Of a stretch of DNA of 64,000 nucleotides, positions 6,228 through 63,867 are shown one piece after another. The notes beneath the pieces were generated by a model, which was not told the origin of the DNA, did no database searches, and saw only the letters and a list, made by a program, of their open reading frames with translations. Position 1 is the stretch's first letter. Every line of letters begins with the position of its first letter. The stretch is from Okamejei kenojei (Eukaryota): positions 5,332,001-5,396,000 of the forward strand of contig CM069154.1 of NCBI GenBank assembly GCA_035221665.1. Reading direction: 5' to 3'. A program made the position numbers and the translations under genes.

Positions 6228-6323
6228 ATGGCAGTGGGACAGGGAGAATTCACCCACCAGAAACAGCCCAGATCCAGGGAACAGTCGCTCTGTTGGTTCT
6301 TGTCGCTGTTGGTCTCACATCAG
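6228..6323 (+). CDS. Copy A exon 1, signal peptide (..GTVALLVLVAVGLTS/G)
   Basis: Hydrophobic leader ends at donor CAG|GTAAAA. ATG 6228 is out of frame by one G versus copy B (ccagggaa vs ccaggggaa), while upstream ATG 6167 is in frame. Confidence 0.75.
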
Positions 6324-7293
6324 GTAAAATCGTTGTTTTACAAAATGCTCTGTCCTTTAGAATTATTTACCAGTGCTTTGAATTATTTGTAAACACAGAC
6401 CTCTCTGTACTGTGTGGGAGCTGATGATGAAGTGCTCAACACTCATTAGTTCATGTAGAGACTTCCATCAGCGGTTGTTTGTCGTGTTGTGTGCAGCCAA
6501 ATTGCACACAGCTAGCTCCCTGTAGAAAATGACCCGACAGCTGGCCTTGTTGATCTTGGGTGTTGGGGTAACTCTTGCCCTGGACCAGAGAGTTTGCTCC
6601 ACTATTCTGGTGCAAACTATCTCCAGGTGAACTTTCTCAGTGACTTGACAGCAGATCAGCTAAATGCTTACCACTTGCATATCTCTTGACTTCCTCCCTC
6701 GCTGACTGTTGGTCTGAAGAAGGGTCTCAACCCAAAATGTCACCCATTGCTTCTCTCCAGAGATGCCGCCTGACCCGCTGAGTTACTCCAGCATTTAGTG
6801 TCCATCAAAGACACATGGCACTCCCTCCACGCACTGCAATGGGAAATGTTGAATCTAAATCTTAGCACATTCAAAGAAAAAACCTGTGAGAGCCAGCCAT
6901 TGGGAACAGGTGGGCATCTCAAATGAGGAAGCACCAGAGTGACTGTCCAATTTAGCATTTGGAGAAGTTGAGGTAATCTCTCCTGAGAAAAAACAGTGCT
7001 TTACAGACTCTGCTGCTCGAGCTGTTCTCCACACTGTGCTTTCCCCAGCCTCTGAGTTCTCCTTCAAGGCATTTGTCTTGTGGCTTGTGAGCGGACCTGG
7101 ACTGATTGATCATGTGTCTCCATCCCAGATCCTGAATCTGCAGAGTTTCACATGTGTTAGAGTCATAGTGATACAGTGTAGAAACAGGCTCTTCAGCCAA
7201 CTTGCCCACACCGGCCAACATGTCTCAGCAACACTAGTCCCACCTGTCCATGTTAGGTCCATGTCCCTACAAACCTGTCCTAATCCATGTACC

Positions 7294-8043
7294 CGGGGCC
7301 GGCCTTAAGCCGTTTGGACCGATTGCTCCCAATTGGGCCCCGCGAGTAAGGGGGCCCCACGCCAGAGTTATCTACTCTCGGCTCAGGTAGATCTACCCCG
7401 GTGGAGGGGGGAGAGAGGGGCGGAGATAGAGTAGAGAGGTGGAGGGGGAAGAAAGGGGTAGACGGGGAGGGGAAACGGAGAAGGGGGAGAAGGGGGAGAG
7501 GGGGAGGTGCGTCGTTTGCTCACGGCAGCGCTCCCGCCCCTCCAGTCGCCGTGCTTCCCACACAGCCCCAGCTCCACCCCTCTCTCTCCCCGGGAGATGC
7601 GGTGAACAATACAGGGAGGGCCGGGCCGGGGGTTGGAGCGACGTTTACAAACATCGGCCTCAGCTCACACCCATCCGCCCGGATCCCGGCCTCAGCTCCC
7701 GCCACGGGCCCTCTCCCTCCCTTCTCTCCTTCCCTCCCACACACACATCATGCACAGACAACTAACACACGCAACTAAGTTAGGATGGGGTAGAAGCCCA
7801 AAGGTAGGATGGGGCTGAAGCCCAAAAATGTAATGCCTGGATTGGTTTTTCACCAATGGTTATTGGTTTTCCAGGATCTATTTAATTAAATTACTTTTTT
7901 TTAAATCATTTCACAGTCACAAAAACATGTGGTATTGTAACTATGTGCTTTTCAGAGGTGATCTACACATTTTGTTTGTTACTTGTAGCCTTACATGTAT
8001 GCAATTTTATATTAAAATGTAGCTTAGATCAGTTTGGTCCATT
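7294..8043. mobile_element. Non-autonomous hAT-like DNA transposon, right end deleted in copy A
   Basis: Left end cggggccggcc follows catgtacc; complete homologue at 49663-50634. Confidence 0.65.
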
Positions 8044-8569
8044 GTGTGAAAAAGACACATCATAATTATTCCAGGTGGACGTGGAGTTTGAAACATCAGT
8101 GGCAGATCCAGCTTCCTCCACAGGCTGGGAACTTTAGTTCAATGGGGCACAAAGTGCTGGCGTAACTCAGTAGGTCAGGCAGTATCTCATGGTCTTTACT
8201 TGAAACGTCACCTATCCATGTTCTCCACAGATGCTGCCTGACCTGCTGAGTCACCACTGACACCACAGGCAGCTGGCTATTCAGCTTTAGTAAAGCACAA
8301 AGTGCTGGAGTAAGGCAGCAGGGCAGGCATCTCTGGAGAACATCGATAGGTGACGTTTTGGGTTGAGACCTGAATAAGGGGTAGGCCAGATGAGGAAAAA
8401 CCTTTTCACCCAGAGTTGTGAATCTGTAGAATTCTTTGCCACAGAGGGCAGTGGAGGCCAATTCACTGGATGTATTCAAGAGAGAGTTAGATATAGTTTC
8501 TTAGGGCTAATGGAATCATGGGATAGGGGGAGCAAGCAGAAGAGGGTACTGATTTTGGAATGATCAGCC

Positions 8570-9170
8570 ATGAACAGTCTGACCTTGTCACAAAACATCG
8601 CATCACTAGTAAAGAGAGCGCAGCAGCGTTTGCACTTTCTGCGCCGGATGAGAAGAGCTCACCTCCCCATCCCGTCCTCACCATTTCTACAGGGGCACCA
8701 TAGAGAGCATTTTGACCATTGCTGCATCTGTCTGGTTTGGGGACTGCAAAGCCTCCGACTGGAAGTCCGTGCAGAGAGTGGTGAGGACGGCTGAAAAAAT
8801 CATCGGGACTTCTCTTCCTTCAATCCGGGACATTGCGCGCAAACGTTGCTTGTCCAAGTCAACAGCATTATAAAAGACCCCACACATCTCCATCATGGAC
8901 TGTTTCACTCTGCTGCCCTCGGGCAAAAGGTATCGCAGTATAAGGAGTGAACGGCCAGGTTCTGCAACAGCTTCTTCCCCCGAGCCATCAGACTCTTGAA
9001 TTCCATATAATGTGCAGCCACTATTATCTATTTTATCTTTTTATCTATTTGATCTTTTTATATATTTTATCTTTTGTTATTTTATGTTGCACGGTGAGCC
9101 AGATGCAACGAAATTTCATTCCAACTTGAAGTTGTTGGTGTATTTTTGAATGACAATAAAGTCTTTGATT
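8570..9170 (+). mobile_element. Rex1/Babar-like LINE 3' fragment (homologue ~51280-51885)
   Basis: LVKRAQQRLHFLRRMRRAHLP C-terminal region. Confidence 0.7.
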
Positions 9171-9580
9171 GAAAATCATATTGAATGGCACTGCTGGCTC
9201 GAATGGCCGAATTGCCTACTTCTGCGCCTATTTTCTATGGTTATATATTTCTATGAATCGTAACCTATCCACTTTCTCCAGAGATAGTTCCTGACCCATT
9301 GAGTTACTCCAGCACTTTGTGTCCTTTTGTGTATTAACCAGCATCTGCAGTTCCTTGTTTCTACTAGTTCAATGGGATGTGGGTTGTAGTGAGATTGAAC
9401 ACTATTGTAGTGAGATTGAAACCCGTCGGTTTCTTCAGAGATGCTGCCTGTCCCGCTGAGTTACTCCAGCTCTTTGTGTCTATCTTTGGTGTAAACCAGC
9501 ACCTGCAGTTCCTTGCTGCACATGATCTTTGCGAAACCATGAAGCTGTCTGAACAGCACAAATTACATGTTTTTTATTGT

Positions 9581-11390
9581 TAACCAACCAACCAACCCAG
9601 CCAGACCCCAGTCTACAAAGAATGGACCCGGCATCCTCTCCTTCCATTCACCACTTCACACCTACTTAAGGCAAGACTCCAGTATGAAAATACTGTCACT
9701 TCACACCCACTCACAAAGACTGGGCCCTTCTACGCCCACCCCCCTCCAATCACCACTTCACACCAAATCACCCATACCCTCTGTGCTGCAAAACATCACT
9801 TATCAAATATCACAATAAAAATAGAGGAGGAGGAGAGGCATTTCAGAGGACAAAAAAGCCGGAAATCTCCAGGACTTGACAATGTTTCCCCCTTGACTCT
9901 TAAGCTCTGTGCCAAACAGCTGGCACCGGTCTACACAGACATTTTAAACCAGTCCCTGCAAACATGTACTGTCCCTGCCTGCTTCAAAGTCTCCACTATT
10001 GTCACTGCACCCAAAAAGGCAAGGATTACTTGTCTTAATGACTACAGGCCTGTCACACTGACCTCTGTAGTCATGAAGACACTCAAAAGGCATGTGCTGG
10101 CCAAGCTGAAAAATATCACAAACCCCTGCTGGACCCTCTGCAGTTTGCATATCGGGCCAATAGATCTGTGGATGATGCAGTCAACCTGGGCCTGCACTTC
10201 ATCCTAGACCACCAGGGGACCTATGCGAGGATCCTGTTTATTGATTTTAGCTCTGCATTCAACACCATTGTGCCAGAGCTACTACACTCCAAACTTTCCA
10301 AGTTGACTGTGCCTGAACCCCTCTGTCGGTGGATCACCAGCTTCCTGACAGACAGGAAGCAGCATGTGAGGCTGGGAAAGCACCTCGAACCCGCAAACGC
10401 TCAGCATAGAGGCACCGCAAGGCTGCGTACTCTCCCCTCTCCTCTACTCTCTCTCTGCACCAATGACTGCACCTCTACAGACTCCTCTGCCAAACTTCCC
10501 AAGTTTGCGGACGATACAACCCTGATTGGACTGATCCAGGATGGGGAGGAATCTGCTTACAGACAGGAAGTGTCACAGCTGGCATCCTGGTGCCGTAGCA
10601 ACAACCTAGAGCTCAATGCTCTTAAGACAGTGGAATTGATTGTAGACTTTAGGAGAGCTCCCCCTCCCCTCACCCCACTCACCATCAACAACACCACAGT
10701 CACATCTGTGGAGTCGTTTAAGTTCCTGGGAAATATCACCTCCAAGGACCTTAAGTGTGGGGCGACCATCAACTCCACAGTCAAAAAGGCACAACAGAGG
10801 ATGTACTTCCTGCGGCAGCTGAGGAAGCACAATCTGCCACAGGCAATGATGGTCCAATTCTACACGGCCATCGTAGAGTCTGTTCTCACCTTCTCCATCA
10901 TGGTCTGGTTTGGCTCAGCCACCAAGCACGACACCTGGAGGCTGCAACGAATCGTCCCGATCAGCTGAGAAGGTTATTGGCTGCAACCTTCCCTACATTG
11001 ATGAACTGTACACTGCAAGGGCCAGGAAGCGAGCAGGCAAGATCATCTCTGACCCCTCTCACCCTGGCCACAAACTCTTTGAATCACTTCCCTCAGGAAG
11101 GCGACTCCAGGCTGTCAAAACTGCCACATAAAAACTGTATTTATCCACGAGTAGTTGCTCTACTCAACAGCCAAAAATCTGTAGCCTCCCTTTGATCTGA
11201 TATTTTGTTGGTTCACATGCTTGATCAATGGTGTTTTGTCATTAATGTTTTTATTATTATTAATGTTTAGCATTTTTCTGAGTGATTCGTAACTGTCACT
11301 GTATGTCATGTTGTTACGTGTGGGCGGAGCACCAAGGCAAATTCCTTGTATGTGAATACTTGGCCAATAAACTTACTTACTTACTTACTT
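9581..11390 (+). mobile_element. Rex1/Babar-like LINE, 5'-truncated
   Basis: RT motifs NDYRPVTLTS, LFIDFSSAFNTI, KFADDTT, KAQQRMYFLR; AATAAA + (CTTA)n tail; the empty site is visible upstream of D2 (~12625). Confidence 0.9.
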
Positions 11391-11448
11391 AAACCTCAGC
11401 TTGTGTTGCTGCAGTGTGAGTGATCTTTCATCATTAATGTGCCCACAG

Positions 11449-11773
11449 GGTCAAGGGGAGTAACTGAACCCGAGGAGGTGAGGGGAGAGTTGGGGCAGTC
11501 GGTCACTGTGGAATTTCAGTATGATTCGAAATATAGAGATTACAACAAGCTGTGGAGTAAAGGTGATGATTACCAGTCATCTTCTACCGTGGTTTCTACT
11601 GATGACCCACGACAAGGGAGAACATCGATAACTGATGACAAAACACAACAGATAAATTTCAGTAACCATCAACAACCTGGAGAAGAGTGATGAAGGACAC
11701 TACTGGTGTGTGATAGCAAAGGGAAAACATTCACACAATGAATCGACCTCCATCTCATTGAAGGTTTCTGAAG
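11449..11773 (+). CDS. Copy A Ig V-set domain 1 exon (B-strand Cys->Phe, +1 frameshift)
   Basis: cacag|GG acceptor and GAAG|gtacgt donor; GQSVTVE(F)QY..KLWSKG..GRTSITD..LEKSDEGHYWC. Confidence 0.85.
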
Positions 11774-12686
11774 GTACGTTGACGATCTCTCCTCCTCACG
11801 CTCCCAGATGTGAAAATTCCAGCCAGGGAATTTCGGCCTCAGTCCTGATGGTGACTTGGTGCCACATCCCCGGGGGTCGAGGTGGACGGGGGGGGGGGGG
11901 TGGTGGTGGTGGTGGTGCATACATCATTTACTGGGCCCACTGTCCCAGGAGCAGTATAGGGGGGGGATGTCAGACACCAGCCCCACGGAAGATCCCAGCT
12001 ACCGCGGTTCTGCTGCTGAGGCTCATTTCCCGAAAGACGATCGCTCCGGGACCAGAACCTCCAGAACCAGGTGGGGGAAAACCAGCCCCTCACCCACCAG
12101 GGTGGAGAAAGGGGGTCAAGGGGGAAGGGGAGGGCGCAGGTTAGTAGAAGATAGTTAAAATTAGAGAATTCAACGTTCAAAAACCGTTGGGTTGTAAACT
12201 ACCTGAGCGTAATATGAGGTGCGGTTTCCTCCAACCTGCATGTGGCCTCACTCTGGCAATGGAGGAGGCCCAGGACAGAAGGTCAGTGTGGGAATGGGAA
12301 GGGATGTTGACAGGGTTGGCAACCAGGAGATCAAGAATGGTCCCGACCCGAAAAGGCCACCTACCCTTTTACTCCAGAGATGCTGCCTGATCTGCCATCA
12401 GTCCTGAAGAAGGGTCTTGACCCGAAACGTCGCCTATTTCCTTCACTCCATAGATGCTTCCGCCCTCACCAGCTGAGTTTCTCCAGCATTTTTGGCTACC
12501 TGCCGAGTTACTCCAGCACTTTGTGTCAATCTTTGGTGTAAACCAGCACCTGCAGTTCCTTGCTACACATGATCTATGCAAAACCATGAACCTGTCTGAA
12601 CAGCACAAATGACATGTTTTTTATTGTTAAACCTCAGCTTGTGTTGCTGCAGTGTGAGTGATCTTTCATCATTCATGTGCCAACAG

Positions 12687-13015
12687 GGTCAGGGGGAATA
12701 ACTGGACCCAAGGATGGTGACGAGAGAGTTGGGGCAGTCGGTCACTGTGGAATGTCGGTATGGTCAGGAATACAGTGACAACAGGAAGCTATGGAGTAAA
12801 GGTTATTATTACCGGTTATCTAAGACCGTGGTTTCTACTGATGACCCACGACAAGGGAGAACATCGATGACTGATAACAAAACACAACGGATACTTTCAG
12901 TAACCATCGACAACCTGGAGAAGAGTGATGAAGGACGCTACTGGTGTGTGATAGTAAAAAAGGAAATCTTTTTCAAGCAATGAAAGGACCTCCATCTCAT
13001 TGAAGGTTTCTGAAG
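12687..13015 (+). CDS. Copy A Ig V-set domain 2 exon (two +1 indels)
   Basis: GQSVTVECRY..KLWSKG..LSVTIDNLEKSDEGRYWC; same splice sites as D1. Confidence 0.85.
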
Positions 13016-13789
13016 GTACGTTGACGATCTCTCCTCACTCTCCCAGGTGAACATTTCCAGCCTGGGAATTCCCGGCCTCAGTCCTGACGGTGACTCGGTG
13101 CCACATCGCCAGGGGTCGGGGTGAAGGGGGGGGAGCACATTTACAGGGGTCCATGAGCCCACTGTCCAAGGAGCAGTGTGTGTGTATGTGTGTGTGAGGG
13201 GGGGGGGGGGACGGGGACGGGGAGGGGGGGACCTCGTGAACGGGGACCGGGCGGTTCTGCTGCTGGCGGCTCATTTCCCCAAAGACGATTGCTCCAGAAC
13301 CAGAAACTCTGCCGTCCCCTCACTGGGGCAGGAGGGGTGGAACCGCCCCCTCACCCTCTCCCCCTGCCCGTCACTGTCACACCCACACACACACATCATC
13401 TGAAGAAGGGTCCGAACCCTATACATCGTCCGTTCATTCCTTCCACAGATGCTGCCGGACCTGCTGAGTTACTCCAGCACTTTGTGTTTTGCTCAAGATT
13501 CCAGCACCTGCAATTCCTTGTGTCTCACAAACTTTGGTGATTCATGAGCTCAGTTTATTGTTGTCGTCTGTTCCGACGTACAGGGAAAAGCTTTTACCGT
13601 GTTTCCAATGAGGGCCAAGTCACTGGGTATTTTTAGGATTCACAGGTTCTCGATTAGTATGGGTGTCAAGCGATATGGGGAGAAGGGAAGAAAATGGGGT
13701 TGAGAGGGAGAGATAGATCAGCCATGATTTGAATGGCGGAGTAGACAAAATGGGCCAAATGAAACCTCATTCCTCCCCTAACACATGAA

Positions 13790-14425
13790 CTTCATTGCAA
13801 GAGGATTTCAGTACAGGAGTGGAGAGGTTCTTCTGCAGTTGTATTGGGGTCTGGTAAAGACCACATCTGGAGTGTTGTGTCCAGTTTTGGACTCCTAATT
13901 TGTGGAAGAACATCCTTGTGATTGAGGCAATGCAGCGTAGGTTCACGAGATTGATCCATGGGATGGCGGGACTGTCACACGAGGAAAGATTGAAAAAGAC
14001 TAGGCTCTAAACTGGAGTTTTAGGAGGATGAGTGGAGATCTTATAGAAACATATAAAATTATAAAAGGACTGGACAAGCTCGATGAAGGAAAAATGTTCC
14101 CAATGTTGGGCGAGTCCAGAACCAGGGGGCACAGTCTTAGAATAAAGGGGAGGCCATTTAAGACTGAGGTGAGAAAAAACTTTTTCACCCAGAGAGTTGT
14201 GAATTTGTGGAATTCCCTGCCACAGAGGGCAGTGGAGTCCAAATGACTGGATGGATTTAAGGAGAGTTAGATGGAGCTCTCGGGGCTAGTGGAATCAAGG
14301 GATATGGGGAGAAGGCAGGCATAGGTTATTGATTGGGGACGTTCAGCCCCTGATCACAATGAATGGCGATGCTGGCTCAAAGGGCCGAAAGGCCTCCTCC
14401 TGCACCTATTTTCTATGTTTCTTTA
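13790..14425 (+). mobile_element. CR1 LINE 3' fragment (homologue ~61030-61650)
   Basis: GDLIETYKIIKGLD..RTRGHSLRI..FFTQRVVNLWNSLP; ttctatgt tail. Confidence 0.85.
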
Positions 14426-14469
14426 ACTTATGAACGAAGAATCCTCATGAGATGACTGATATGTCATCT

Positions 14470-15420
14470 TCCGAACTTTTTGTATTATTATAGGGCAGTG
14501 CATATTAAGAATAATTTACTGCTTGGACAGTTCTACCCAACAGACAGAATGAATAAGAATGGAGAAAGAGGACTGTTCTCCTTGTAATATAGGAGCGATC
14601 CTCTTCTCCCCGATAAAACTGAACAACACAATATATAAGAATAACCTAATTATACATGAGACAATAAGAATTTGGAAACAAATAAAATTATCCTTAAAAT
14701 TAAGAAACCTATCTTTGTTAATGCCAATAGTGAATAACCCTTCATTTAAACCATCTCTTATTGATAAAACATATAATCAATGGGAAAGAATGGGAATTAA
14801 AAGGATCGGTGATATGTCTGAAATGGGAAATCTGTTATCATTCCAACAATTCCAATTAAAATTTTAACTGAAAAATAACCAATATTTTAAATATCTTCAG
14901 ATCTGCGACTTCATGAAGAAATACATACAAAGATATCAAAACATAACTTTAGATCCACTGGAAGAAGCAATGAACATTAAGGCTGACTCACAGAAATTAA
15001 TATCATATTTATATGATAGTATTTTAAAAATATTTTAAACCATCGACAGAGGCACTTAGAGAAGAGTGGGAATGAGAATTAATGATAAAAATTACGAAGG
15101 AAACATGGGAAACGTATTTGATATATACATAAATGTTTTTGATTAATGTAAGATAAAATTGAATAAAAATTTTACATAGATTATATTACTCAAAAACTAG
15201 ATTGAATAAATTCTATCCAAAACTTCCCCCATTTGTGATAAATGTCTATCCCAAAATTCAACGATAACACACTCTTTTGTCTCCTGCATAAAACGTTATA
15301 AATTCTGGAGTGATATTTTTGAAATATTTACAAAATTATTTAAGATAAAAATGGAACCTAATACTTAAATGATTGTATTTGGAGTAATGGCAGATGGGAA
15401 TAAATTGAACTTCATCTCAA
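14470..15420 (+). mobile_element. Older L1 ORF2 3' fragment, left part; interrupted by the younger L1 and resuming at 22220-22790
   Basis: ETIRIWKQIK..WERMGIKRIGD; contiguous in copy B at ~61690-63205 with an A-rich tail. Confidence 0.8.
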
Positions 15421-15430
15421 ATTTTATTTT

Positions 15431-18400
15431 ATTTTGTTTTAATTTTTTTTTTTTTAATTTTTTTATTATAGAAACAAAGTAATTACAAAATACACTCTTA
15501 TACAACGATAAAAAACTATATAATATTAATGATAAATTGATACTGTTTATATTATTTATAATATTATCAATAATACATATCAAGGTTAATTATTTTTGTA
15601 TAATTGGGAGTGTGTATAGTATCTTCCTAGTATTAGCATTATACTCATATTACTACTCATAATAATCCATATTTTCCTCTGATTTCAAAATACAAGTCCC
15701 CCATGTTATAATTGTATAATACACAATATTAACCGAACTTCTATAATATTCATTATATTTTCATAATAATAAGAGTGTTTGTATTATTATTGACCTTTTA
15801 TATTTTCTAAATTATTATATAGTTGAAACTACACAATTTTTATGTAATTAAAAAAATACAGGACATCAATAATATTTTCATACAAGTAATGATATCTATA
15901 TTCGCATTAATATTAAAAAATTTAATATAATGTGTTTTTCTATACTTTTTTTTAATTAAGGATAGAAAAAATAAAGAATAGAAAATAGAAAAGCGAGTGT
16001 TGAAAAGTTTGATGGAGATTGGAATATTATTCATTAATTCGTCCTTGGAGATATATTCATGATTTTTTATTATATATGTTTCTTCATCCATTCAGATATT
16101 CAGGCCTCAGTCAAGGTCTTCGCGCCGAACCGTTATGACCCTGTAAAATATTTAATATATGGAGACCAAATCTCTCTGAAGAGATCTATCCTATCCATAA
16201 GGACAAGCCTCAATCTCTCCAAATGAAGTGTCCTCAGACATTTCTGTATTCCACATTTTAATTGTTGGGGATGCAGGGCCTTTCCAAAATTTTAGTATTA
16301 ATTTTTTCCCAATTATTAGACAATAGTCGATTAAAAATTCTTTGGTTTCATTGTAATTAGTTGGTCCGTTTCAAGTATTCCAAGTATTATTAACTTTGGA
16401 TCAGAAATCATTGTAATTATTATTAACATTCGAAATTATCTTAAATATTTCGTTCCAATATTCTACAATCTTTATACAATTAGTGAATGAATGTGACAAA
16501 TTTGCTTCTGAGATTTGACATTTTATCACATATAGGCGATAATTTTGGAAATATTATTATGTAATTTAGATTTGGAATAATGTAGTCTATGTAGAATTTT
16601 AAACTGTATAAGAACCATGTTTAGCATTTAACGAACAATGATGTATGTGTTGTAAGCTTTTCGTCCCATATTTCTGAGCTTATTATTTGACCTAATTCCA
16701 TTTTCCCAAATATGTCTATGTGTTTCCCGTTGATGGGATATCTACTTTCCAATAAAATATTATAATAAATGATATCATAAAATTTTTTTTTCTGTATTTG
16801 GATGTTTATTCAAGCATTCATCTAAAATGTCAGTCTTTCTATTTCTAAGTTCTTGTGTATTTGCAGAGATATAGTTTCTGATTTGTAAATATCTAAAAAT
16901 ATTCATTTATTTTGTAGTCCATAAGTTTGTTGTAACTCTTGAAATGAAAAGAAAAGAGCTTTCCTTATAAAGATCCCCTATGTTTTAAAATTCCTTTATT
17001 TTTCCATTGTAATATCCATCGTTGAAGGTTTAAACGTAAAATTATTGGCAATGGTAAGACCTAACGGTTATAGATTTTAATTTTAATGTTTTCTTTATTT
17101 GTTTTCCCAAATGCGGATTCCGTTTTCTATTATCGGGTTTTTTTCACTATTAAATTTTTCTTAGTCACGTTTGTTTGTATTAGCAAATATTTTAGAACTA
17201 ATTTCAAATAGGAGAACAATTCTTCTTTTTCCATTTTTAACCAGTTTGGTTTGTTATCTATTTCTTCTAGCCAAAATTCATGTTTTTGATATTAACTGCC
17301 CAGTAATAAAACATAAAATTTGGTAATTGCTAATCCCCCATTTATTTTAGCTTTACATAAGTGTTTTTTTTTTTTTATTTATTCTGTGGTTCTTATAATC
17401 CCAAATAAGTTAGTAACTAGGGAGTCTAATTTTAAAAAAAAAAATCTTTAGGGAGAGATATATCGGTATTAATTGAAATAAATATAATAATTGTGGGAGA
17501 AAAATCATTTTTATCGCGTTGATTTTACCTAACATTGAAATAGGTAAACTTTTCCAGTATAAAATATTCTTATTTAATTTGTTCAGTAATAACGGGAAGT
17601 TAGATTTAAATAAAGAATCAAATCTTTTTGTAACGAAATTGCCAAGATATTTAATATTTTCATTTGTTATCTTGAAAGGAAATTGTTGTAATATCTGTAA
17701 ATTATTCATCGTTATTGGCATAAGTTCACTTTTATTCCAATTGATACTGTATCCTGAGATTAATCCAAATTCCGTTATTAGTTTTAACAAATTTCGGATA
17801 CTTATTTCCGGTTCAGTGATATAATAGTAATACATCGTCCGCATATAAGGAGATTTTATTCTTAGTATCTTTAGTATCATATCCATGTATTTCTGGATGT
17901 AATCTCACCCTTTGGGCGAGAGGGTTCTATTGCTAGCGCGAACAATAAAGGTGATAGAGGACAGCCTTGTCTACAACCTCGAGATAAACTAAATTTAGTA
18001 GATAACATACGGTTTGTTTTATTTCTAGCTGTTGGGTTTGCATATAACAATTTAATCCAAGTAGTAAAACTTCTCACCGAGCTTGAAAGCTTCCATCACC
18101 GAAAAATAGATAAGGCCATTCCACTTGGTCAAAAGCTTTTTCTGCATCCAGCGAGATAACTACTAAATCTTTTTTATCACTTCTTTTCGAATATATAATA
18201 TTAAATAACCGTCTTAGATTATATGAGGAATATCTTTTAGATATAAAATCCTGTTTGATCGGGATGAATTAATTCATTGACAACTGTACTTAATCTTTGT
18301 GCTAATATTTTTGTTAGAATCTTTTGATCCGTATTTAATAGAGCTATTGCTCTATATGATCCTGGTTCATCCAAGTCTTTATTTATTTTAGGTATAAGTG

Positions 18401-21400: not shown

Positions 21401-22219
21401 GATCTTCGTGTTTCTCGCGACCTTCAGGAATCCCTTGCGATCCTCAAGTTCTGTCTTCTCTGATAGCCTTCTAGCTGAGTACATTTCTCTGTTGTTTTAG
21501 TCGGCAAAGTCATTAGACGTTCATGTTCTGTTATCAGCTTTGCTGTAGACTCAGTACTTGCCTCCGCTATCTGTTCAAAGTTCTTCATGCCATCTGCCTG
21601 TTGTTCCAGCACATTCTCAATAGGATTAATCTTATTTTGAAAGTCTTTTTTAACCTTTTCAAGTTTTTTCTCCATCTTACTTTCCATATCCTTAAGCATT
21701 TCAATAAGTTCTTTCTTCAAATCTTCCGATACTTTCTTGACCTTTTTTTCAATTTTTAACATTGTTTCTTTTTGAAATTCATTCAGTTGATTTTTCATCT
21801 GATCCATCTGATTGTTTATTTGACATATTTCTTCCTTTAATTCTTCCTTTATACCTTTCATTTCTTCCTTTAATTCTAGCTTTAAAATAGCCATCTGTTG
21901 AGATATAAAAGTTTTCAAATCCTCACCTTCCGCTTTTGTGCCTGGTTTCTTGGAAACATCTTCCATGGAGCTAGTCCTACTCGAATCCGAGGCTTCACCT
22001 CGGTTTTCTGTCGGGTTGAACGAGTTTTACTCTTGTCGGTAGGGCTCCGTGGCGTCGACATAGTTAGTCGCGCGGCTGATGACGTCACTCGGCACAGTCG
22101 GTATAGAAACGGAAGGCAGTGTGTAGCAGACAGCCGGTAAGTCTTTTAAAACCCCTTTTTTTCCGATTTTTTACGGAGCTGGCTGGGCGCTATCCTCTAG
22201 GGCTCCATAGCGCCACCGG
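15431..22219 (-). mobile_element. Apparently full-length L1-clade LINE (ORF1 ~20955-22040; ORF2 19991 to ~16100, frameshifted)
   Basis: Coiled-coil ORF1 with RRQNLRI; APE SWNVKG, IQETHL, IGGDFN, RIDYFL; [15 protein letters not shown]; poly(A) tail; TSD attttatttt at 15421-15430 and 22220-22229; absent from copy B. Confidence 0.95.
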
Positions 22220-23276: not shown

Positions 23277-23436
23277 GGTCTCAAACACAACGCCCAGACA
23301 TGGTCACCACCACCTCTTACAACAATAAGCACAAGGGCTTCCACCACAACTACTCTCACCACCCTGACCTCAAGATGCACCAATCACCAAGAAAGCAAGT
23401 TCCGTTGAGTCTCTTGATTCAACACCTCCCAAACAG
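23277..23436 (+). CDS. Copy A Ser/Thr-rich mucin-like stalk exon
   Basis: tttctttatctccacaag| acceptor and AACAG|gttagt donor; homologous to the open stalk exon of copy B, with three 1-bp insertions (net +3). Confidence 0.75.
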
Positions 23437-47979: not shown

Positions 47980-48076
47980 ATGGCGGTGGGACAGGGAGAA
48001 TTCACCCACCAGAAACGGCCCAGATCCAGGGGAACAGTCGCTCTGTTGGTTCTTGTCGCTGTTGGTCTCACATCAG
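47980..48076 (+). CDS. Copy B signal-peptide exon
   Basis: gacATGG start context; 32 codons + 1 nt; CAG|gtaaat donor. Confidence 0.8.
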
Positions 48077-54000: not shown

Positions 54001-57000
54001 ACTGCAAGGGACCTACATTTGTTTTAACTAACCTCTTTCTCTTCAATATCTATAAAAACTTTTGCAGTCAGTTTTTATGTTCCCTGCCAGTTCTCTTTCA
54101 TAATCTATTTTTCCTTCCTAATTAAGCCCTTGTCCTCCTCTGCTGGGTCTCTGAATTTTCTCCAGTCCTCTGGTATGCTGCTTTTTCTGGCTACTTTGTA
54201 CGCATCATCCTTTGCTTTGATACTATCCCCTGATTTTCCCTTGTTATCCACGGATGCACTACCTTCCCCGATTTATTCTTTGTGCCAAACTGGGATGAAA
54301 CAATTTTTGTAGTTCATCCATGCAGTCTTTAAATGTCTTCCATTTGTATATATCCACCGTCAACCCTTTTAGAATTAATTGCCAGTCAATCTTGGCCAAT
54401 TCACGTCTCATACCCTCAAAAAGTTACCTTTCTTTAAGTTCAGAACCATTGTTTCTGAATTAAACAATGTCACTCTCCATCCTAATGGAGAACTCAACCA
54501 TATATTATGGTCACTCTTGCCCAAGGGGGCACGTACAACAAGACGGCTAATTACCCCTTCCTCATACTCAAACCCAGTCTAAAATAGCTGCTCTCTCGTT
54601 GGTTCCTCTACATGTTGATTTAGATAACTATCCCGCATACCATTCCAAAAAATCCTCTTCCTCAGCACCCCTGCCCAATTTGATTAACCCAATCTATATG
54701 TAGATTGAAGTCACCCATTATAACTGTTTTGCCTTTGTCGCACGCATTTCTAATTTCCTGTTTGATACCATCCCCAACTTTCTCTGCTAACTGTTAGGTG
54801 GCCTGTACACAACACCCACCAGCGTTTTCTGCCCCTTAGTGTTTTGTAGCTCTACCCATACCGATTCCACATCCTCCAAGCTAATGTCCTTCCTTTCCAT
54901 TGCTTTAAATGGTGGCCGATTAGGAAAAGGGGAGATGCAGCGAGACCTGGGTGTCATGGTACACCAGTCATTGAAAGTAGGCATGCAGGTGCAGCAGGCA
55001 GTGAAAAAAAGCGAATGGTATGTTAGCTTTCATAGCAAAAGGATTTGAGTACAGGGGAGCAGGGAGGTGTCTACTTCAGTTGTACAGGGTCTTGGTGAGA
55101 CCACACCTGGAGTATTGCGTGCAGTTTTGGGTCTCCAATCTGAGGAAGGACATTATTGCCATAGAGGGAGTGCAGAGAAGGTTCACCAGACTGATTCCTG
55201 GGATGTCAGGACTGTCTTATGAAGAAAGACTGGATAGACTCGGTTTATTACTCTCTGGAATTTAGGAGATTAAGAGGGGATCTTATAGAAACTTACAAAA
55301 TTCTTAAGGGGTTGGACAGGCTAGATGCAGGAAGATTGTTCCCGATGTTGGGGAAGTCCAGGACAAGGGGGTCACAGCTTAAGGATAAAGGGGGGAAAAT
55401 CCTTTAAGACCGAGATGAGAAAGACTTTCTTCACACAGAGAGTGGTGAGTTCTCTGGAAACTCTCTGCCACAGAGGGTAGTTGAGGCCAGTTCATTGGCT
55501 ATATTTAAGTGAGTTGGATGTGGCCCTTGTGGCTAAGGGGATCAGAGGGTATGGAGAGAAGGCAGGTACGGGATACTGAGTTGGATGATCAGCCATGATC
55601 ATATTGAATGGCGGTGCAGGCTCGAAGGGCTGAATGGCCTACTCCTGCACCTAATTTCTATGTTTCTATGTTTCTATGTTTTAATCTCCTCTCTAACCAG
55701 CAACGCTACTCCACCTCCTTTTCGTTTCTCTCTATCCCTCCTGAATATTGAATATCCCTGGATGTTCAGCTCCCAGCCTACGTCACCCTGGAGCCATGTC
55801 TCCGTGATCCCAACTATATCATAATCATTAATATCTATCTGCACGTTCAACTCGTCCACCTTATTACGAATACTCCTTGCATTGAGACACAAAGCCTTCA
55901 GGCTTGTCTTTACAACGCATTTTACTCCTTATACAATTTTGCTGAAAAGTGGCCCTTTTTGATTTTAGCCCTGGTTTTGTCTGCCTGCCACTTTTACCTT
56001 TCACCTTGCTACCTAATGCTTCTACCTCATTTTACACCCTCCTGCCTCTCTGCTCTTGTACCCATCCCCTGCCACATTAGTTTAAATCCTCCCCGACAGC
56101 ACTAGCAAACACTCCCCCAAGAACATTGGTTCCATTCCATTCCAGGTGCAAACCGTCCTGTTTGTACCGGTCCCACCTCCCCCAGAACTGGTCCCAGTGC
56201 CCTAAAAAATTTGAATCCCTCCCCCTTGCACCACTTTTCAAGCCACGTATTCATTTGCATTATCCTCCTATTTCTACTCTGACTGGCCCGTGGTACTGGT
56301 AGTAATCCGGAGATTACTACCTTTGAGGTCCTACTTTTAAGTTTATCTCCTAGCTCCCTAAATTCACCTTGTAGGACCTCATCCCTTTTTTTACCTATAT
56401 CGTTGGTGCCAACATGCACCACGACAACTGGCTGTTCACCCTCCCCCTCCAGAATGTTCTGCAGCCGTTCAGTGACATCCCTGACCTTTGCCCAGGGAGG
56501 CAACATACCATCCTGGAGTCTCGTTTGCGGCCGCAGAAACGCCTATCTATTCCCCTGACAATTTGAATCCCCTATTACTATTGCCCTTCCCCTCTTTTTT
56601 CCCCCCTCATGTGCTGCAGAGCCACCCATGGTGCCATGAACCTGCCTGCTGCTGCATTCCCCTGATGAGCCATCTCCCTCAACAGTATCCAAAATGGTAT
56701 ACCTGTTTAGGAGGGTAGATGACCGCAGGGACTCTTTGTGTCTATCTTTGGTGTAAACCAGCACCTGCAGTTCCTTGATGCTGCACATGATCTTTGCGAA
56801 ACCATGAAGCTGTCTGAACAGCACAAATTACATGTTTTTTTATTGTTAACCAACCAACCAACCCAGCCAGACCACAGTCTACAAAGAATGGACCCGGCAT
56901 CCTCTCCTTCCCATTCACCACTTCACACCTACTTAAGGCAAGACTCCAGTATGAAAATACTGTCACTTCACACCCACTCACAAAGACTGGGCCCTTCTAC

Positions 57001-60000
57001 GCCCACCCCCCTCCAATCACCACTTCACACCAAATCACCCACACCCTCTGTCACTTATCAAATATCAACAATAAAAATAGAGGAGGAGGAGAGGCATTTC
57101 AGAGGACAAAAAAGCCGGAAATCTCCAGGACTTGACAATGTTTCCCCCTCGACTCTTAAGCTCTGTGCCAAACAGCTGGCACCGGTCTACACAGACATTT
57201 TAAACCAGTCCCTGCAAACATGTACTGTCCCTGCCTGCTTCAAAGTCTCCACTATTGTCACTGCACCCAAAAAGGCAAGGATTACTTGTCTTAATGACTA
57301 CAGGCCTGTCACACTGACCTCTGTAGTCATGAAGACACTCTAAAGGCATGTGCTGGCCAAGCTGAAAAATATCACAAACCCAGTGCTGGACCCTCTGCAA
57401 TTTGCATATCGGGCCAATAGATCTGTGGATGATGCAGTCAACCTGGGCCTGCACTTCATCCTAGACCACCAGGGGACCTATGCGAGGATCCTGTTTATTG
57501 ATTTTAGCTCTGCATTCAACACCATTGTGCCAGAGCTACTACACTCCAAACTTTCCAAGTTGACTGTGCCTGAACCCCTCTGTCGGTGGATCACCAGCTT
57601 CCTGACAGACAGGAAGCAGCATGTGAGGCTGGGAAAGCACATCTCGGACCCCCAAACGCTCAGCATAGAGGCACCGCAAGGCTGCGTACTCTCCCCTCTC
57701 CTCTACTCTCTCTGCACCAATGACTGCACCTCTACAGACTCCTCTGCCAAACTTCCCAAGTTTGCGGACGATACAACCCTGATTGGACTGATCCAGGATG
57801 GGGAGGAATCTGCCTACAGACAGGAAGTGTCACAGCTGGCGTCCTGGTGCCGTAGCAACAACCTAGAGCTCAATGCTCTTAAGACAGTGAAATTGATTGT
57901 GGACTTTAGGAGAGCTCCCCCTCCCCTCATCTCACTCACCATCAACAACACCACAGTCACATCTGTGGAGTCGTTTAAGTTCCTGGGAAATATCACCTCC
58001 AAGGACCTTAAGTGTGGGCGACCATCAACTCCACAGTCAAAAAGGCACAACAGAGGATGTACTTCCTACGGCAGCTGAGGAAGCACAATCTGCCACAGGC
58101 AATGATGGTCCAATTCTACACGGCCATCGTAGAGTCTGTTCTCACCTTCTCCATCATGGTCTGGTTTGGCTCAGCACCAAGCACGACACCTGGAGGCTGC
58201 AGCGAATCGTCCGATCAGCTGAGAAGGTTATTGGCTGCAACCTTCCCTCCATTGATGAACTGTACACTGCAAGGGCCAGGAAGCGAGCGGGCAAGATCAT
58301 CTCTGACCCCTCTCACCCTGGCCACAAACTCTTTGAATCACTTCCCTCTGGAAGGCGACTCAAAGCTGCCACATAAAAAACTGTTTTTATCCACGAGTAG
58401 TTGCTCTACTCAACAGCCAAAAATCTGTAGCCTCCCTTTGATCTGATATTTTGTTGGTTCACATGCTTAATCAATGGTGTTTTATCATTAATGTTTTATT
58501 ATTATTAATGTTTAGTATTTTCTGAGTGATTCGTAACTGTCACTGTATGTCATGTTGTTACGTGTGGGCGGAGCACCAAGGCAAATTCCTTGTATGTGAA
58601 TACTTGGCCAATAAACTTACTTACTTACTTAAACCTCAGCTTGTGTTGCTGCAGTGTGAGTGATCTTTCATCATTAATGTGCCCACAGGGTCAAGGGGAG
58701 TAACTGAACCCGAGGAGGTGAGGGGAGAGTTGGGGCAGTCGGTCACTGTGGAATGTCAGTATGATTGGAAATATAGAGATTACAGCAAGCTGTGGAGTAA
58801 AGGTGATGATTACCAGTCATCTTCTACCGTGGTTTCTACTGATGACCCACGACAAGGGAGAACATCGATAACTGATGACAAAACACAACAGATAGTTTCA
58901 GTAACCATCAACAACCTGGAGAAGAGTGATGAAGGACACTACTGGTGTGTGATAGCAAAGGGAAAACATTCACACAATGAATCGACCCCCATCTCATTGG
59001 TGGTTTCTGAAGGTACGTTGACGATCTCTCTCCTCACGCTCCCAGATGTGAAAATTCCCAGCCTGGGAATTTCGGCCTCAGTCCAGATGGTGACTCGGTG
59101 CCACATCCCCGGGGGTCGAGGTGGATGGGGAGGGGGGGGGGGGGTGGTGGTGGTGGTGGTGCATACATCATTTACTGGGCCCACTGTCCCAGGAGCAGTA
59201 TAGGGGGGGGATGTCAGACACCAGCCCCACGGAAGATCCCAGCTACCGCGGTTCTGCTGCTGAGGCTCATTTCCCGAAAGACGATCGCTCTGGGACCAGA
59301 ACCTCCAGAACCAGGTGGGGGAAAACCGGCCCCTCACCCACCAGGGTGGAGAAAGGGAGAAAGGGGTCAAGGGGGAAGGGGAGGGCGCAGGTTAGTAGAA
59401 GATAGTTAAAATTAGAGAATTCAACGTTCAAACCGTTGGGTTGTAAACTACCTGAGCGTAATATGAGGTGCGGTTCCTCCAACCTGCATGTGGCCTTACT
59501 CTGGCAATGGAGGAGGCCCAGGACAGACAGGTCAGTGTGGGAATGGGAAGGGACGTTGACAGGGTTGGCAACCGGGAGATCAAGAAGGGTCCCGACCCGA
59601 AAAGGCCACCTACCCTTTTACTCCAGAGATGCTGCCTGATCTGTCATCAGTCTGAAGAAGGGTCTTGACCCGAAACGTCGCCTATTTCCTTCACTCCATA
59701 GATGCTTCCGCCCTCACCAGCTGAGTTTCTCCAGCATTTTTGTCTACCTGCCGAGTTACTCCAGCACTTTGTGTCAATCTTTGGTGTAAACCAGCACCTG
59801 CAGTTCCTTGCTACACATGATCTATGCAAAACCATGAACCTGTCTGAACAGCACAAATGACATGTTTTTTATTGTTAAACCTCAGCTTGTGTTGCTGCAG
59901 TGTGAGTGATCTTTCATCATTCATGTGCCCACAGGGTCAGGGGGAATAACTGGACCAAAGGAGGTGAGGGGACAGTTGGGGCAGTCGGTCACAGTGGAAT

Positions 60001-63000
60001 GTCGGTATCGTCAGGAATACAGTGACAACAGCAAGCGATGGCTTAAAGGTTATTATTACCGGTTATCTAAGACCGTGGTTTCTACTGATGACCCACGACA
60101 AGGGAGAACATCGATAACTGATAACAAAACACAACGGATACTTTCAGTAACCATCGACAACCTGGAGAAGAGTGATGAAGGACACTACTGGTGTGCGATA
60201 CACGTACGATGGAACTTCGATGAAAGGACATCCATCTCATTGAAGGTTTCTGAAGGTACGTTGAAGATCTCTCCTCACTCTCCCAGATGTGAACATTCCA
60301 GCCTGGGAATTCCTGGCCTCGGTCCTGACGGTGATTCGGTGCCACATCGCCGGGAGTCAGGGTGAAGGGGGGGAGCACATTTACAGGGGTCCATGAGCCC
60401 ACTGTCCAAGGAGCAGTGTGTGTATGTGTGTGTGTGGGGGGGGGGGGGGGACGGGGACGGGGAGGGGGGGACCTCGTGAACGGGGACCGGCGGTTCTGCT
60501 GCTGGCGGCTCATTTCCCCAAAGACGATCGCTCCAGGACCAGAACCTCTGCCGTCCCCTCACTGTGGCAGGAGGGGTGGAACCGCCCCCTCACCCTCTCC
60601 CCCTGCCCGTCACTGTCACACCCACACACACACATCATCTGAAGAAAGGTCCCAACCCTATACATCGTCCGTTCATTCCTTCCACAGATGCTGCCGGACC
60701 TGCTGAGTTACTCCAGCACTTTGTGTTTTGCTCAAGATTCCAGCACCTGCAATTCCTTGTGTCTCACAAACTTTGGTGATTCATGAGCTCAGTTTATTGT
60801 TGTCGTCTGTTCCGACGTACAGGGAAAAGCTTTTACCGTGTTTCCAATGAGGGCCAAGTCACTGGGTATTTTTAGGATTCACAGGTTCTCGATTAGTATG
60901 GGTGTCAAGCGATATGGGGAGAAGGGAAGAAAATGGGGTTGAGAGGGAGAGATAGATCAGCCATGATTGAATGGCGGAGTAGACAAAAATGGGCCAAATG
61001 ACCTCATTCCTCCCCTAACACATGAACTTCATTGCAAGAGGATTTCAGTACAGGAGTGGAGAGGTTCTTCTGCAGTTGTATAGGGGTCTGGTAAGACCAC
61101 ATCTGGAGTGTTGTGTCCAGTTTAGGTCCCCTAATTTGAGGAAGGACATCCTTGTGATTGAGGCAGAATCACGAGATTGATCCATGGGAAGGCGGGACTG
61201 TCACACGAGGAAAGATTGAAAAGACTCGGCTCTAAACTGGAGTTTAGGAGGATGAGTGGAGATCTTATAGAAACATATAAAATTATAAAAGGACTGGACA
61301 AGCTCGATGAAGGAAAAATGTTCCCAATGTTGGGCGAGTCCAGAACCAGGGGGCACAGTCTTAGAATAAAGGGGAGGCCATTTAAGACTGAGGTGAGAAA
61401 AAACTTTTTCACCCAGAGAGTTGTGAATCTGTGGAATTCTCTGCCACAGAGGGCAGTGGAGTCCAAATGACTGGATGGATTTAAGAGAGAGTTAGATGGA
61501 GCTCTCGGGGCTAGTGGAATCAAGGGATATGGGGAGAAGGCAGGCATAGGTTATTGATTGGGGACGTTCAGCCCTGATCACAATGAATGGCGATGCTGGC
61601 TCAAAGGGCCGAAAGGCCTCCTCCTGCACCTATTTTCTATGTTTCTATAACTTATGAACGAAGAATCCTCATGAGATGACTGATATGTCATCTTCCGAAC
61701 TTTTTGTATTATTATAGGGCAGTGCATATAAAGGATAATTTACTGCTTGGACAGTTCTACCCAACAGACAGAATGAATAAGAATGGAGAAAGAGGACTGT
61801 TCTCCTTGTAATATAGGAGCGATCCTCTTCTCCCCGATAAAACTGAACAACACAATATATAAGAATAACCTAATTATACATGATACAATAAGAATTTGGA
61901 AACAAATAAAATTATCCTTAAAATTAAGAAACCTATCTTTGTTAATGCCAATAGTGAATAACCCTTCATTTAAACCATCTCTTATTGATAAAACATATAA
62001 TCAATGGGAAAGAATGGGAATTAAAAGGATCGGTGATAATGTATGAAATGGGAAATCTGTTATCATTCCAAAATTCCAATTAAAATTTTAACTGAAAAAT
62101 AACCAATATTTTAAATATCTTCAGATCTGCGACTTCATGAAGAAATACATACAAAGATATCAAAACAACTTTAGATCCACTGGAAGAAGCAATGAACATT
62201 AAGGCTGACTCACAGAAATTAATATCATATTTATATGATAGTATTTTAAATATAGATTTACCATCGACAGAGGCACTTAGAGAAGAGTGGGAATGAGAAT
62301 TAATGATAAAAATTACGAAGGAAACATGGGAAAACGTATTTGGTATATATACATAAATGTTCAATTAATGTAAGATAAAATTGAATAAAAATTTTACATA
62401 GATTATATTACTCAAAAACTAGATTGAATAAATTCTATCCAAATATTTCCCCCATTTGTGATAAATGTCTATCCCAAAATGCAACGATAACACACTCTTT
62501 TGTCTCCTGCATAAAACTGCATATAAATTCTGGAGTGATATTTTTGAAATATTTACAAAATCTATTTATCTATTTAAGATAAAAATGGAACCTAATACTG
62601 AAATGATTGTATTTGGAGTAATGGCAGATGGGAATAAATTGAACTCATCTCAAATTTTATTTTTTAATTATCGGTTAATAATGGCAAAAAAACGTATACT
62701 TTTGGAAAAATACAGCCATACTAATGCTTAAAATGTGGATTTCAAACATGTTGGACACTGCACATCTTGAGGAAACGCGATTCCTCCTAATAGATAAATC
62801 AGACCAATTTTTAACGAGTTGGTCTCCATTTGTCGACTTTTTGGAAGCATATGGTGCAACAAAATGGTAGAAGCTAACTGTTTCAGGATTGGGAGAGGGA
62901 TGGTCACGAATATAGATAACGATCTCCTTAATCTCTTACTTTCTACTCTTTCTCTTTCTTTTTTCTTTTTCTTTCTCAACTTTCTTCTTTCACACTTTTT

Positions 63001-63867
63001 TTCTTTCTCACACACTATATATCACATGTTTCTATCTTTTATTATCTTTTCTCTCTTTTTCTTTTTCATTATTAAAAAGAATAATAATAAGAAGCTGTAC
63101 ATACAATGTAACATGTCAATATATATTAGGCACCTTGATGCCATATTCCTGTACTTACTTTTAATAAAATAAAAAATAAAAAAAAATAAAATTTAAAAAA
63201 AAATACAAAAATGAGATGACTGATATGGACTTTACACTGAGCCGCACAAACTGCACAAGATGAAATACTCAACGGGTTGGGCAGCATCTGTGGAGAGAGA
63301 ACGAGAGTTAATGTTTCATGTAGATACCTCCAACCAAATTGCATTATTTCCAATTCAGTCCACTTAATTAAAATAGTCCATGAATCCACCCGCTCCCACT
63401 TTAAGTTCTTCTCCAACGTAGAAGACATGTGCCTAACTCTAGCAGCAGGAAGATAACACAGCCCGTGGGACTCTGAAGGGCATGAAAGAAGTCTCTGAAT
63501 GCTTGCGACCATCCGGTGGCATCTTAATGGGTGAGCCTCCTGTCTAGATCAAGAGGCATGGTCCATCCATGGTGGCCTCAGAAGGATCTTTGCCCAAATA
63601 TGTGTAGTGGGATTCAAACAAAGAATCTCCCCCCCACACCACTAAAGTGGCACAGAATGTGCTTTCAGACATTTAATGTTCAAAAACTTCATTTTCTTTA
63701 TCTCCACAAGGGTCTCAAACAAGCCGCCCAGACATGGTCACCTCCATCTCTACAACAATAAGCACAAGGGCTTCCACCACAACCACTCTCACCACCCTGA
63801 CTCAAGATGCACCAACCACCAAGAAAGCAAGTTCCATTGAGTCTCCTGGTTCAACACCTCCAAACAG
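47980..63867 (+). CDS. CD300/pIgR(CMRF35)-like receptor, copy B, 5' part; exons 47980-48076, 58689-59012, 59935-60255, 63711-63867; continues past the window
   Basis: Spliced frame is open: MAVGQGEFTHQKRPRSRGTVALLVLVAVGLTS / IgV1 (108 codons) / IgV2 (107 codons) / GSQTSRPDMVTSISTTISTRASTTTTLTTLTQDAPTTKKASSIESPGSTPPN. Confidence 0.88.
49663..50634. mobile_element. Non-autonomous hAT-like DNA transposon
   Basis: 8-bp TSD catgtacc (49655-49662 and 50635-50642); imperfect TIRs CAGGGCCGGCC / GGCCGCCCACCTG. Confidence 0.75.
52189..56731 (-). mobile_element. CR1 LINE, 4.5 kb, with SGNH-esterase ORF1 and APE-RT ORF2; present only in copy B
   Basis: IVIGDS and VVVHVGTNDIG; CLNARSIRNK..DIVGITETWL; (ttctatgt)n tail; ctctt repeated at 52184-52188 and 56732-56736; empty site at ~9470. 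Confidence 0.92.
54906..55680 (+). mobile_element. Nested CR1 3' fragment inserted in opposite orientation into the endonuclease region of the host CR1
   Basis: [22 protein letters not shown]; (tttctatg)3 tail; tttaa at both junctions. Confidence 0.88.
56848..58630 (+). mobile_element. Rex1/Babar-like LINE (duplicate of 9581-11390)
   Basis: ORF 57350-58078 RT: LDPLQFAYR, APQGCVLSPLLY, KFADDTT. Confidence 0.9.
58689..59012 (+). CDS. Copy B Ig V-set domain 1 exon (intact)
   Basis: VTVECQY..KLWSKG..DEGHYWCVI; canonical B-F Cys pair, C-strand Trp and DxGxYxC. Confidence 0.92.
59935..60255 (+). CDS. Copy B Ig V-set domain 2 exon (intact)
   Basis: VTVECRY..KRWLKG..DEGHYWCAIHVRWNFDERTSISLKVSE. 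Confidence 0.92.
61690..63205 (+). mobile_element. Older L1 3' fragment, uninterrupted (empty site at ~62654)
   Basis: Equals 14470-15420 joined to 22220-22790. Confidence 0.8.
63711..63867 (+). CDS. Copy B mucin-like stalk exon
   Basis: Open S/T/P-rich frame, phase 1 in and phase 2 out, matching the TM exon phase seen in copy A. Confidence 0.85.

Follow-up and report, generated by a model that had tools for sequence, protein, structure and literature searches.

CD300 receptors are encoded by clustered genes, with inhibitory forms that carry several immunoreceptor tyrosine-based inhibition motifs (ITIMs) and activating forms that have a charged transmembrane (TM) segment. Multigene families of immunoglobulin (Ig) receptors are also on record in fish. 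The zebrafish PIGRL genes are described as a tandem multigene family (Kortum et al. 2014, cited in PMC9321927) that numbers 25 copies, each with 2-3 Ig domains (PMC4016189), and the MDIR genes of the clearnose skate as multigenic activating and inhibitory Ig receptors with a variable domain number and CD300/TREM/pIgR-like domains (PMC3031540, citing Cannon et al. 2006). For sharks, a survey published in 2014 reported no homologues of pIgR (PMC4016189). We analysed a window of 64,000 nucleotides (nt) from the skate Okamejei kenojei (GenBank assembly GCA_035221665.1, contig CM069154.1, positions 5,332,001 to 5,396,000), which we consider with good confidence to hold two tandem paralogues of an elasmobranch CD300/pIgR-like paired-receptor family, the first (copy 1) decayed and the second (copy 2) apparently live.

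Self-comparison and blastn of the window halves identified a tandem segmental duplication with both units on the same strand, each carrying a leader exon, two V-set Ig exons (D1 and D2) and a Ser/Thr-rich stalk exon on the + strand. The leader ATG codons of the two copies are spaced 41,752 nt apart. The preliminary description of this DNA had placed an open second copy about 41 kb downstream of the first; both the distance and the open frames were borne out, with only four exons of that copy lying in the window. The large-scale features are the following:

4054..23572, + strand: duplicated unit 1, comprising the promoter region, copy 1 from leader to stalk, and shared pieces of long interspersed nuclear elements (LINEs) (blastn, per-segment identity)
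45772..64000, + strand: duplicated unit 2, continuing past the window end (blastn, per-segment identity)
45177..45676, no strand: assembly gap between the copies, 95 nt before the start of unit-2 homology (window sequence)

The tandem adjacency of the copies and their 41.75 kb spacing depend on the scaffold join at this gap. Neither this N gap nor the one in the copy 1 tail region (below) is crossed by any exon or reading frame.

All four exons of copy 2 in the window are open, with AG/GT borders and compatible phases:

47980..48076, + strand: copy 2 leader exon, open, with ATG, basic n-region and hydrophobic core; phase 0 to 1; 97% identical to the leader of the Amblyraja model P0157 (sequence reading, tblastn)
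58689..59012, + strand: copy 2 Ig exon D1, open, 324 nt, phase 1 to 1 (Pfam, splice borders)
59935..60255, + strand: copy 2 Ig exon D2, open, 321 nt, phase 1 to 1; groups with Amblyraja D2 (Pfam, splice borders, tree)
63711..63867, + strand: copy 2 stalk exon, open, 157 nt, phase 1 to 2; 25 of 51 residues are Ser/Thr and 5 of 51 Pro (sequence reading)

Copy 1 has seven exons on the + strand with AG/GT sites. As assembled, however, it does not offer a single open frame. The seven exons had previously been proposed as phase-compatible, and their places (within a few bases), splice sites and phases were confirmed, whereas four of them proved to be broken. The lesions, called relative to copy 2 and to orthologues, all affect the front end:

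6228..6323, + strand: copy 1 leader exon, broken; 96 nt long, one fewer than its 97-nt counterpart (comparison with copy 2)
11449..11773, + strand: copy 1 Ig exon D1, broken; the first canonical Cys is changed to Phe (TGT>TTT), followed by a 1-nt insertion at 11654 and then stops (comparison with copy 2)
12687..13015, + strand: copy 1 Ig exon D2, broken; a 1-nt insertion at 12715, a 7-nt insertion at 12971 and in-frame stops, with an FG loop of a different type (comparison with copy 2)
23277..23436, + strand: copy 1 stalk exon, with three 1-nt insertions, at 23317, 23368 and 23433 (160 nt against 157); open, but the middle reads a shifted, non-mucin peptide (comparison with copy 2)

In the leader, one nucleotide is missing at 6276, so that translation from the ATG at 6228 no longer reads the hydrophobic core in frame, and the exon ends in phase 0 rather than phase 1. 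It was found that every one of the seven exon indels separating the copies lies in copy 1, with none in copy 2, at a rate (3-19 per kb) within or under the range seen in non-coding sequence of the duplicated units (7-29 per kb). This one-sided distribution points to real decay of copy 1 under relaxed constraint, and copy 1 as assembled is most likely a pseudogene. The same confinement of indels to copy 1 argues for selection having kept copy 2 open.

Four open reading frames (ORFs) in the window contain V-set Ig domains, and the Pfam V-set profile is covered in full by both copy 2 domains, with E-values of 7e-15 (D1) and 1e-13 (D2). Both domains hold GQSVTVEC, K-x-W and DEGHYWC, corresponding to the canonical Cys ... 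Trp ... DxGxYxC core. Among solved structures, the best per-domain match is CD300f/CLM-1 (1e-16 to 1e-17, 64-68 bits), while the best single stretch of pIgR is its D5 (50 bits, one alignment shown), which falls behind CD300f per domain. Weaker matches were obtained to other CD300 chains (1e-9 to 1e-13), NKp44 (1e-7), antibody V domains (1e-7) and TREM (1e-4 to 1e-5). The assignment of the domains to the CD300/pIgR type, nearer to CD300 and pIgR than to other V-set families, is thus supported by the sequence comparisons, and the V-domain type named in the preliminary description proved correct.

Homology searches were run exon by exon. A full-library search with the D1 exon matched 1951 library proteins at E<=0.001, and the named relatives are RefSeq models termed 'polymeric immunoglobulin receptor-like' or 'CMRF35-like molecule', from Leucoraja, Amblyraja, Rhinoraja, Narcine, Hemitrygon, Mobula, Pristis, Heterodontus, Heptranchias, Scyliorhinus and Carcharodon. 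Like the Pfam scores, these matches are not a product of chance. A further protein search with the D1 exon alone, confined to a set length range, gave no match, which has no bearing on the family. RefSeq models mapped to the window by tblastn give the same order of parts, so that the order leader, IgV, IgV, Ser/Thr stalk, uncharged TM and ITIM tail, as originally read, agrees with both the copy 1 exons and the models. The Amblyraja radiata model P0157 ('CMRF35-like molecule 3') likewise encodes two Ig domains, and its identity to the window is 97% in the leader and 84% in the TM; the tail of Leucoraja erinacea P0155 is 94% identical to the exon at 28802-28957, and that of Rhinoraja longicauda P0154 is 82% identical. 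Together with P0153 (like P0154 named 'pIgR-like') and P0002 (XP_055510911.1, Leucoraja erinacea, like P0155 named 'polymeric immunoglobulin receptor-like'), these skate models share with the window genes the V-domain type, the Ser/Thr stalk and the exon order, leaders that are 88-97% identical, an uncharged TM and an ITIM-YxN-ITIM tail that is 82-94% identical. They differ in their Ig domains, which are only 65-81% identical to those of the window and so mark a different species or a different paralogue, and in the number of these domains (1 to 4); some members have an Arg-containing TM (Arg-TM) with a short tail, and P0157 has an ITIM-less alternative last exon. The window genes have the common leader, the V domains and the Ser/Thr stalk ending in PNR, with the inhibitory back end in copy 1, and are ordinary new members of an already annotated elasmobranch CD300/pIgR-like family. 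The family had been called hidden, which is true of a prokaryote-style ORF track only: RefSeq already models it in skates, rays and sharks.

In a tree of the individual domains, window D1 groups with Amblyraja and Leucoraja domains of D1 type (98/95) and window D2 with Amblyraja D2 (95/81), so that the two Ig domains of P0157 pair one-to-one with those of the window. All skate domains form one clade (100/96), with window D1 and D2 inside, and Narcine, Hemitrygon and Mobula multiplied their domains independently. Because D1-type and D2-type domains are separate lineages, the two-domain plan is older than the split of the skate genera. The claim of a lineage-specific expansion therefore needs qualification: domain duplications are indeed lineage-specific within an elasmobranch-wide family, but the two-domain layout is shared with the Amblyraja model. 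Near-identical intron sequence flanks D1 and D2. It could suggest that the second Ig exon arose by a very recent duplication within the gene, but the two domain types are separate lineages common to Amblyraja, and gene conversion is the more likely source of the near-identical introns.

Divergence between the copies is uneven. Between the units, identity is 87.8% over the 5' flank and the leader and reaches 98.5% around D1. A stepwise climb (87.8%, 93.7%, 94.7%, 98.5%) was observed over 4860-15430 versus 46599-62663, one step falling where the shared LINE begins (9470), and this suggests that the units were partially homogenised after the original duplication. The D2 exon, in contrast, is 91.6% identical between the copies (12687-13015 versus 59935-60255) within introns that are approximately 98% identical. 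Codon differences between copy 1 and copy 2 number 4 synonymous and 29 non-synonymous, and those between D1 and D2 number 5 synonymous and 32 non-synonymous; such replacement-rich differences are what diversifying selection or patchy conversion typically leaves in arrays of immune receptors. The divergence of the D2 exon suggests a mosaic evolution of D2 by conversion or selection. We also observed that the D2 FG loop is of the Amblyraja D2 type in copy 2 and of the Leucoraja 'KGIF' type in copy 1.

The membrane and cytoplasmic exons of copy 1 were located by a combination of hydropathy scan, motif scan and homologue-guided tblastn:

24057..24172, + strand: copy 1 TM exon, intact, phase 2 to 1, 620 nt after the stalk exon; an uncharged 22-residue hydrophobic span, then a basic stop-transfer stretch (hydropathy, tblastn)
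27057..27103, + strand: copy 1 cytoplasmic exon 1 (cyt1), intact, 47 nt, phase 1 to 0 (homologue-guided tblastn)
28182..28394, no strand: assembly gap in the cyt1-cyt2 intron, separated by 1078 nt from the cyt1 donor and by 407 nt from the cyt2 acceptor
28802..28957, + strand: copy 1 cytoplasmic exon 2 (cyt2), intact, phase 0, with a stop at its end (motif scan, tblastn)

The TM exon is 81-85% identical to skate orthologues. In cyt2, the motifs follow in the order ITIM (VIYTTV), YMNL (a YxN motif), ITIM (VVYATI) and stop. Orthologous mRNA models have cyt1 and cyt2 in the same order and on the same strand as here. Copy 1 thus encodes (S/I/V/L)xYxx(I/V/L) motifs after an uncharged TM, as in ITIM receptors, with phosphatase binding predicted from these motifs. 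The uncharged TM and the three Tyr motifs (ITIM, YxN, ITIM) are kept from skates to Heterodontus, Heptranchias and Carcharodon, representing three shark orders. The description of the genes as ITIM-bearing receptors accordingly applies to the tail of copy 1, with its two ITIMs, whereas the back end of the open copy 2 lies off the window. Downstream, an alternative acceptor (tccag|ACATTT) occurs 75 nt past the stop of the ITIM exon, at 29033-29078 (+ strand), and in Amblyraja P0157 the ITIM exon is replaced by a short terminal peptide with 87% identity to 29033-29078. An ITIM-less isoform may exist via the acceptor near 29033.

No run recorded as RNA contained the stretch. A run from the same organism, of unrecorded kind (X6), was considered together with two DNA runs (X1 and X2), with its reads compared to 58500-64000. 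X6 depth is present in the D1, D2 and stalk bins and falls to 0 to 2 in unique intron bins, where X1 and X2 have depth. Contigs of X6 match copy 2 exactly over 58826-58940 (115 nt) and 63760-63868 (109 nt), where copy 1 differs. The X6 stalk contig stops fitting at the predicted donor, whereas the DNA contigs run on into the intron, and X6 contigs at the 5' edge of D1 terminate at the acceptor. From these alignments, copy 2, or an identical paralogue, is likely transcribed and spliced.

The family also includes members of opposite predicted sign. The skate models P0002, P0175 and P0176 (Amblyraja, Leucoraja) have the same leader and stalk, but an Arg-TM and a short tail. The occurrence of ITIM models and Arg-TM models with a common leader and stalk indicates a paired activating/inhibitory family. 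Within the window, an Arg-TM exon was not detected anywhere by motif search or permissive tblastn. An open stretch at 24177-24284 (+ strand), 5 nt past the donor of the copy 1 inhibitory TM exon, resembles an Arg-TM exon (LNVR ... G.L ... LL). Its score was reached by 0-7 of 2000 shuffles, and it ranks only about 7th of the 1274 open stretches window-wide, which is not significant. The Rhinoraja model P0153 reads an inhibitory TM and then an Arg-TM in one reading frame. That the skate genes derive from a dual-cassette ancestor, in which an activating Arg-TM exon came directly after the inhibitory one and of whose activating cassette 24177-24284 in copy 1 would be the decayed relic, is a speculation we judge improbable; if true, a dual TM cassette would allow one gene to make either paired-receptor partner by exon choice.

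Several points weigh against the reading of a decayed copy 1 beside a live copy 2. The membrane and tail exons of copy 2 fall beyond the window end, and with the front of copy 1 broken, no complete intact ITIM-bearing gene is therefore demonstrated within the window. Linking the ITIM exon to copy 1 means crossing the gap at 28182-28394, and so depends on the scaffold join. As regards transcription, no exon-to-exon junction was displayed, the table of joints being filled by transposon repeats, and the kind of X6 is unrecorded. In terms of domain type, the second (C-C') disulfide (WC ... C ... VVST) is absent, with both positions non-Cys in window D1 and D2. This Cys pair is also missing in all skate domains of the family and in those of Pristis and Scyliorhinus; it is kept in Heterodontus, Hemitrygon, Mobula and bird pIgR, with only the first Cys kept in Narcine and Heptranchias. 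The C-C' disulfide is typical of the CD300/pIgR domain type, but not strictly defining. A further concern is that indels between the units are unusually frequent relative to substitutions throughout (a ratio of about 0.4-0.5); moreover, short homopolymers harbour most of the exon indels, five of the seven being single bases next to such runs. Some of the copy 1 lesions could therefore be assembly errors. In its strongest form, this argument would make copy 1 really intact, its frameshifts being errors of a noisy long-read assembly, and the window would then contain one complete two-Ig ITIM gene plus a second front. The intact TM, cyt1 and cyt2 exons of copy 1 agree with such a view, though with about 2.5 indels expected their intactness is not significant alone. 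Among the matches listed for the DNA runs on copy 2, at a coverage below 1x, there was no copy-1-type indel. However, if errors fell evenly, the probability of all seven falling in copy 1 would be about 0.8%, and the Cys>Phe change, the 7-nt insertion and a non-homopolymer T insertion in D2 are atypical of read errors. An intact copy 1 is, on balance, unlikely.

Other readings concern the identity of copy 2 and of the locus as a whole. Copy 2 could be of the activating type (Arg-TM, short tail), standing beside a decayed inhibitory copy 1, as the Arg-TM exon at the end of P0175, P0176 and P0002 would allow. We regard this as somewhat doubtful, while giving it some weight: the units are approximately 97.8% identical over 22220-23276, just before the stalk exon, blastn identity is 95.8% to the window end, the inhibitory TM exon of copy 1 closely follows its stalk exon, and the search for an Arg-TM exon in the window was negative. 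It is very unlikely that the two copies are dead, unexpressed remnants of a birth-and-death array, with close paralogues elsewhere giving the exon-shaped coverage of X6. Although 3 to 7 differences separate certain X6 contigs from either copy, the two contigs of 115 and 109 nt are identical to copy 2 where copy 1 differs, and the exons of copy 2 are all open, while the same exons in copy 1 gained indels at a non-coding-like rate. Least probable of all, to the point that we reject it, is orthology with pIgR, by which the locus would be a cartilaginous-fish pIgR with two domains, teleost-like, carrying IgM across epithelia. The top solved-structure matches are pIgR chains (the two-domain teleost pIgR at 4e-23), many relatives are named 'pIgR-like' in RefSeq, and cartilaginous fish have J chain (PMC9321927) with no pIgR identified (PMC4016189). 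Whole-chain pIgR scores, however, are sums over five domains, and per domain the 64-68 bits of CD300f exceed the 50 bits of pIgR D5 in the alignment shown. An ITIM-YxN-ITIM tail, multiple copies, Arg-TM partners and 1 to 5 domains are moreover traits of a paired signalling receptor and not of a single-copy transport receptor.

Under the preferred reading, two tandem paralogues of which one has decayed and one is live, the gene plan comprises seven exons encoding a signal peptide, the V-type domains D1 and D2, an O-glycosylation-type Ser/Thr stalk, the TM and two cytoplasmic segments. This is the plan of a type I membrane protein. By analogy with CD300a/CD300f and other ITIM receptors, an intact member would be located on leukocytes, with the membrane-distal V domains binding ligand, probably an exposed polar lipid or other conserved surface cue as for CD300. 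Src-family kinases would phosphorylate the two ITIM tyrosines, leading to recruitment of SHP-1, SHP-2 or SHIP and a damping of activating signals, and the central YxN could recruit Grb2. Among the activating partners damped in this way would be the Arg-TM paralogues, themselves expected to associate with an adaptor that has an acidic TM.

The remaining window content is transposon-derived; the window holds the receptor family and transposons only, and its remaining long ORFs are LINE reverse-transcriptase, endonuclease and ORF1 pieces:

9470..11200, + strand: LINE fragment with a reverse-transcriptase ORF in intron 1, directly 5' of D1; copy-2 counterpart at 56732-58446 (blastn, homology)
15422..22220, - strand: AT-rich L1-like LINE insert private to copy 1 intron 3 (blastn, homology)
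52188..56732, no strand assigned: insert of approximately 4.5 kb private to copy 2 intron 1, with a GDSL-lipase/OSK-type LINE ORF1 on the - strand (blastn, homology)

The back end of copy 1 is bracketed by an inverted pair of AT-rich L1-like LINEs at 15422-21995 (- strand) and 32052-38495 (+ strand), which are 80-84% identical and contain endonuclease, reverse transcriptase and a coiled-coil ORF1. This pair is a possible inversion substrate. Located 190-330 nt 5' of each leader ATG (5884-6039 and 47654-47764, + strand) is sequence with 54-63% amino acid identity to the C-terminus of Rhinoraja P0153, and that model seems to read from its Arg-TM exon into the region before the next gene.

The locus offers a close view of birth-and-death evolution, with a live and a decaying copy, partial homogenisation between them, exon differences that nearly all alter amino acids, and a second disulfide lost in skates, although nothing in it is new in kind, the family being annotated in related species. 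As a carefully resolved locus of a cartilaginous-fish paired-receptor family, it bears on the origin of the CD300/pIgR/Fc-alpha-mu receptor domain type. RefSeq models and the locus together show that pIgR-type V domains are abundant in elasmobranchs, in CD300-like signalling receptors.

No MDIR-named protein occurs among the relatives listed in the protein searches. As described, MDIR resembles the window family in being a skate activating/inhibitory Ig multigene family. Zebrafish PIGRL, as described, follows the same logic of lineage-specific expansion, but is an independent teleost expansion. pIgR, including the two-domain teleost form (PDB 5f1s), shares the V-domain subtype and, in teleosts, the number of two domains; it is nevertheless a single-copy transport receptor that binds polymeric Ig and has a sorting and transcytosis tail without ITIM, unlike the multi-copy window family with its ITIM tail and Arg-TM partners. 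The mammalian CD300 receptors (CD300A, CD300LF/CLM-1) provide the best per-domain sequence match and have the same type I topology, with a V domain on a Ser/Thr-rich stalk. They differ in having one Ig domain in place of two, and in possessing the C-C' disulfide that is missing here.

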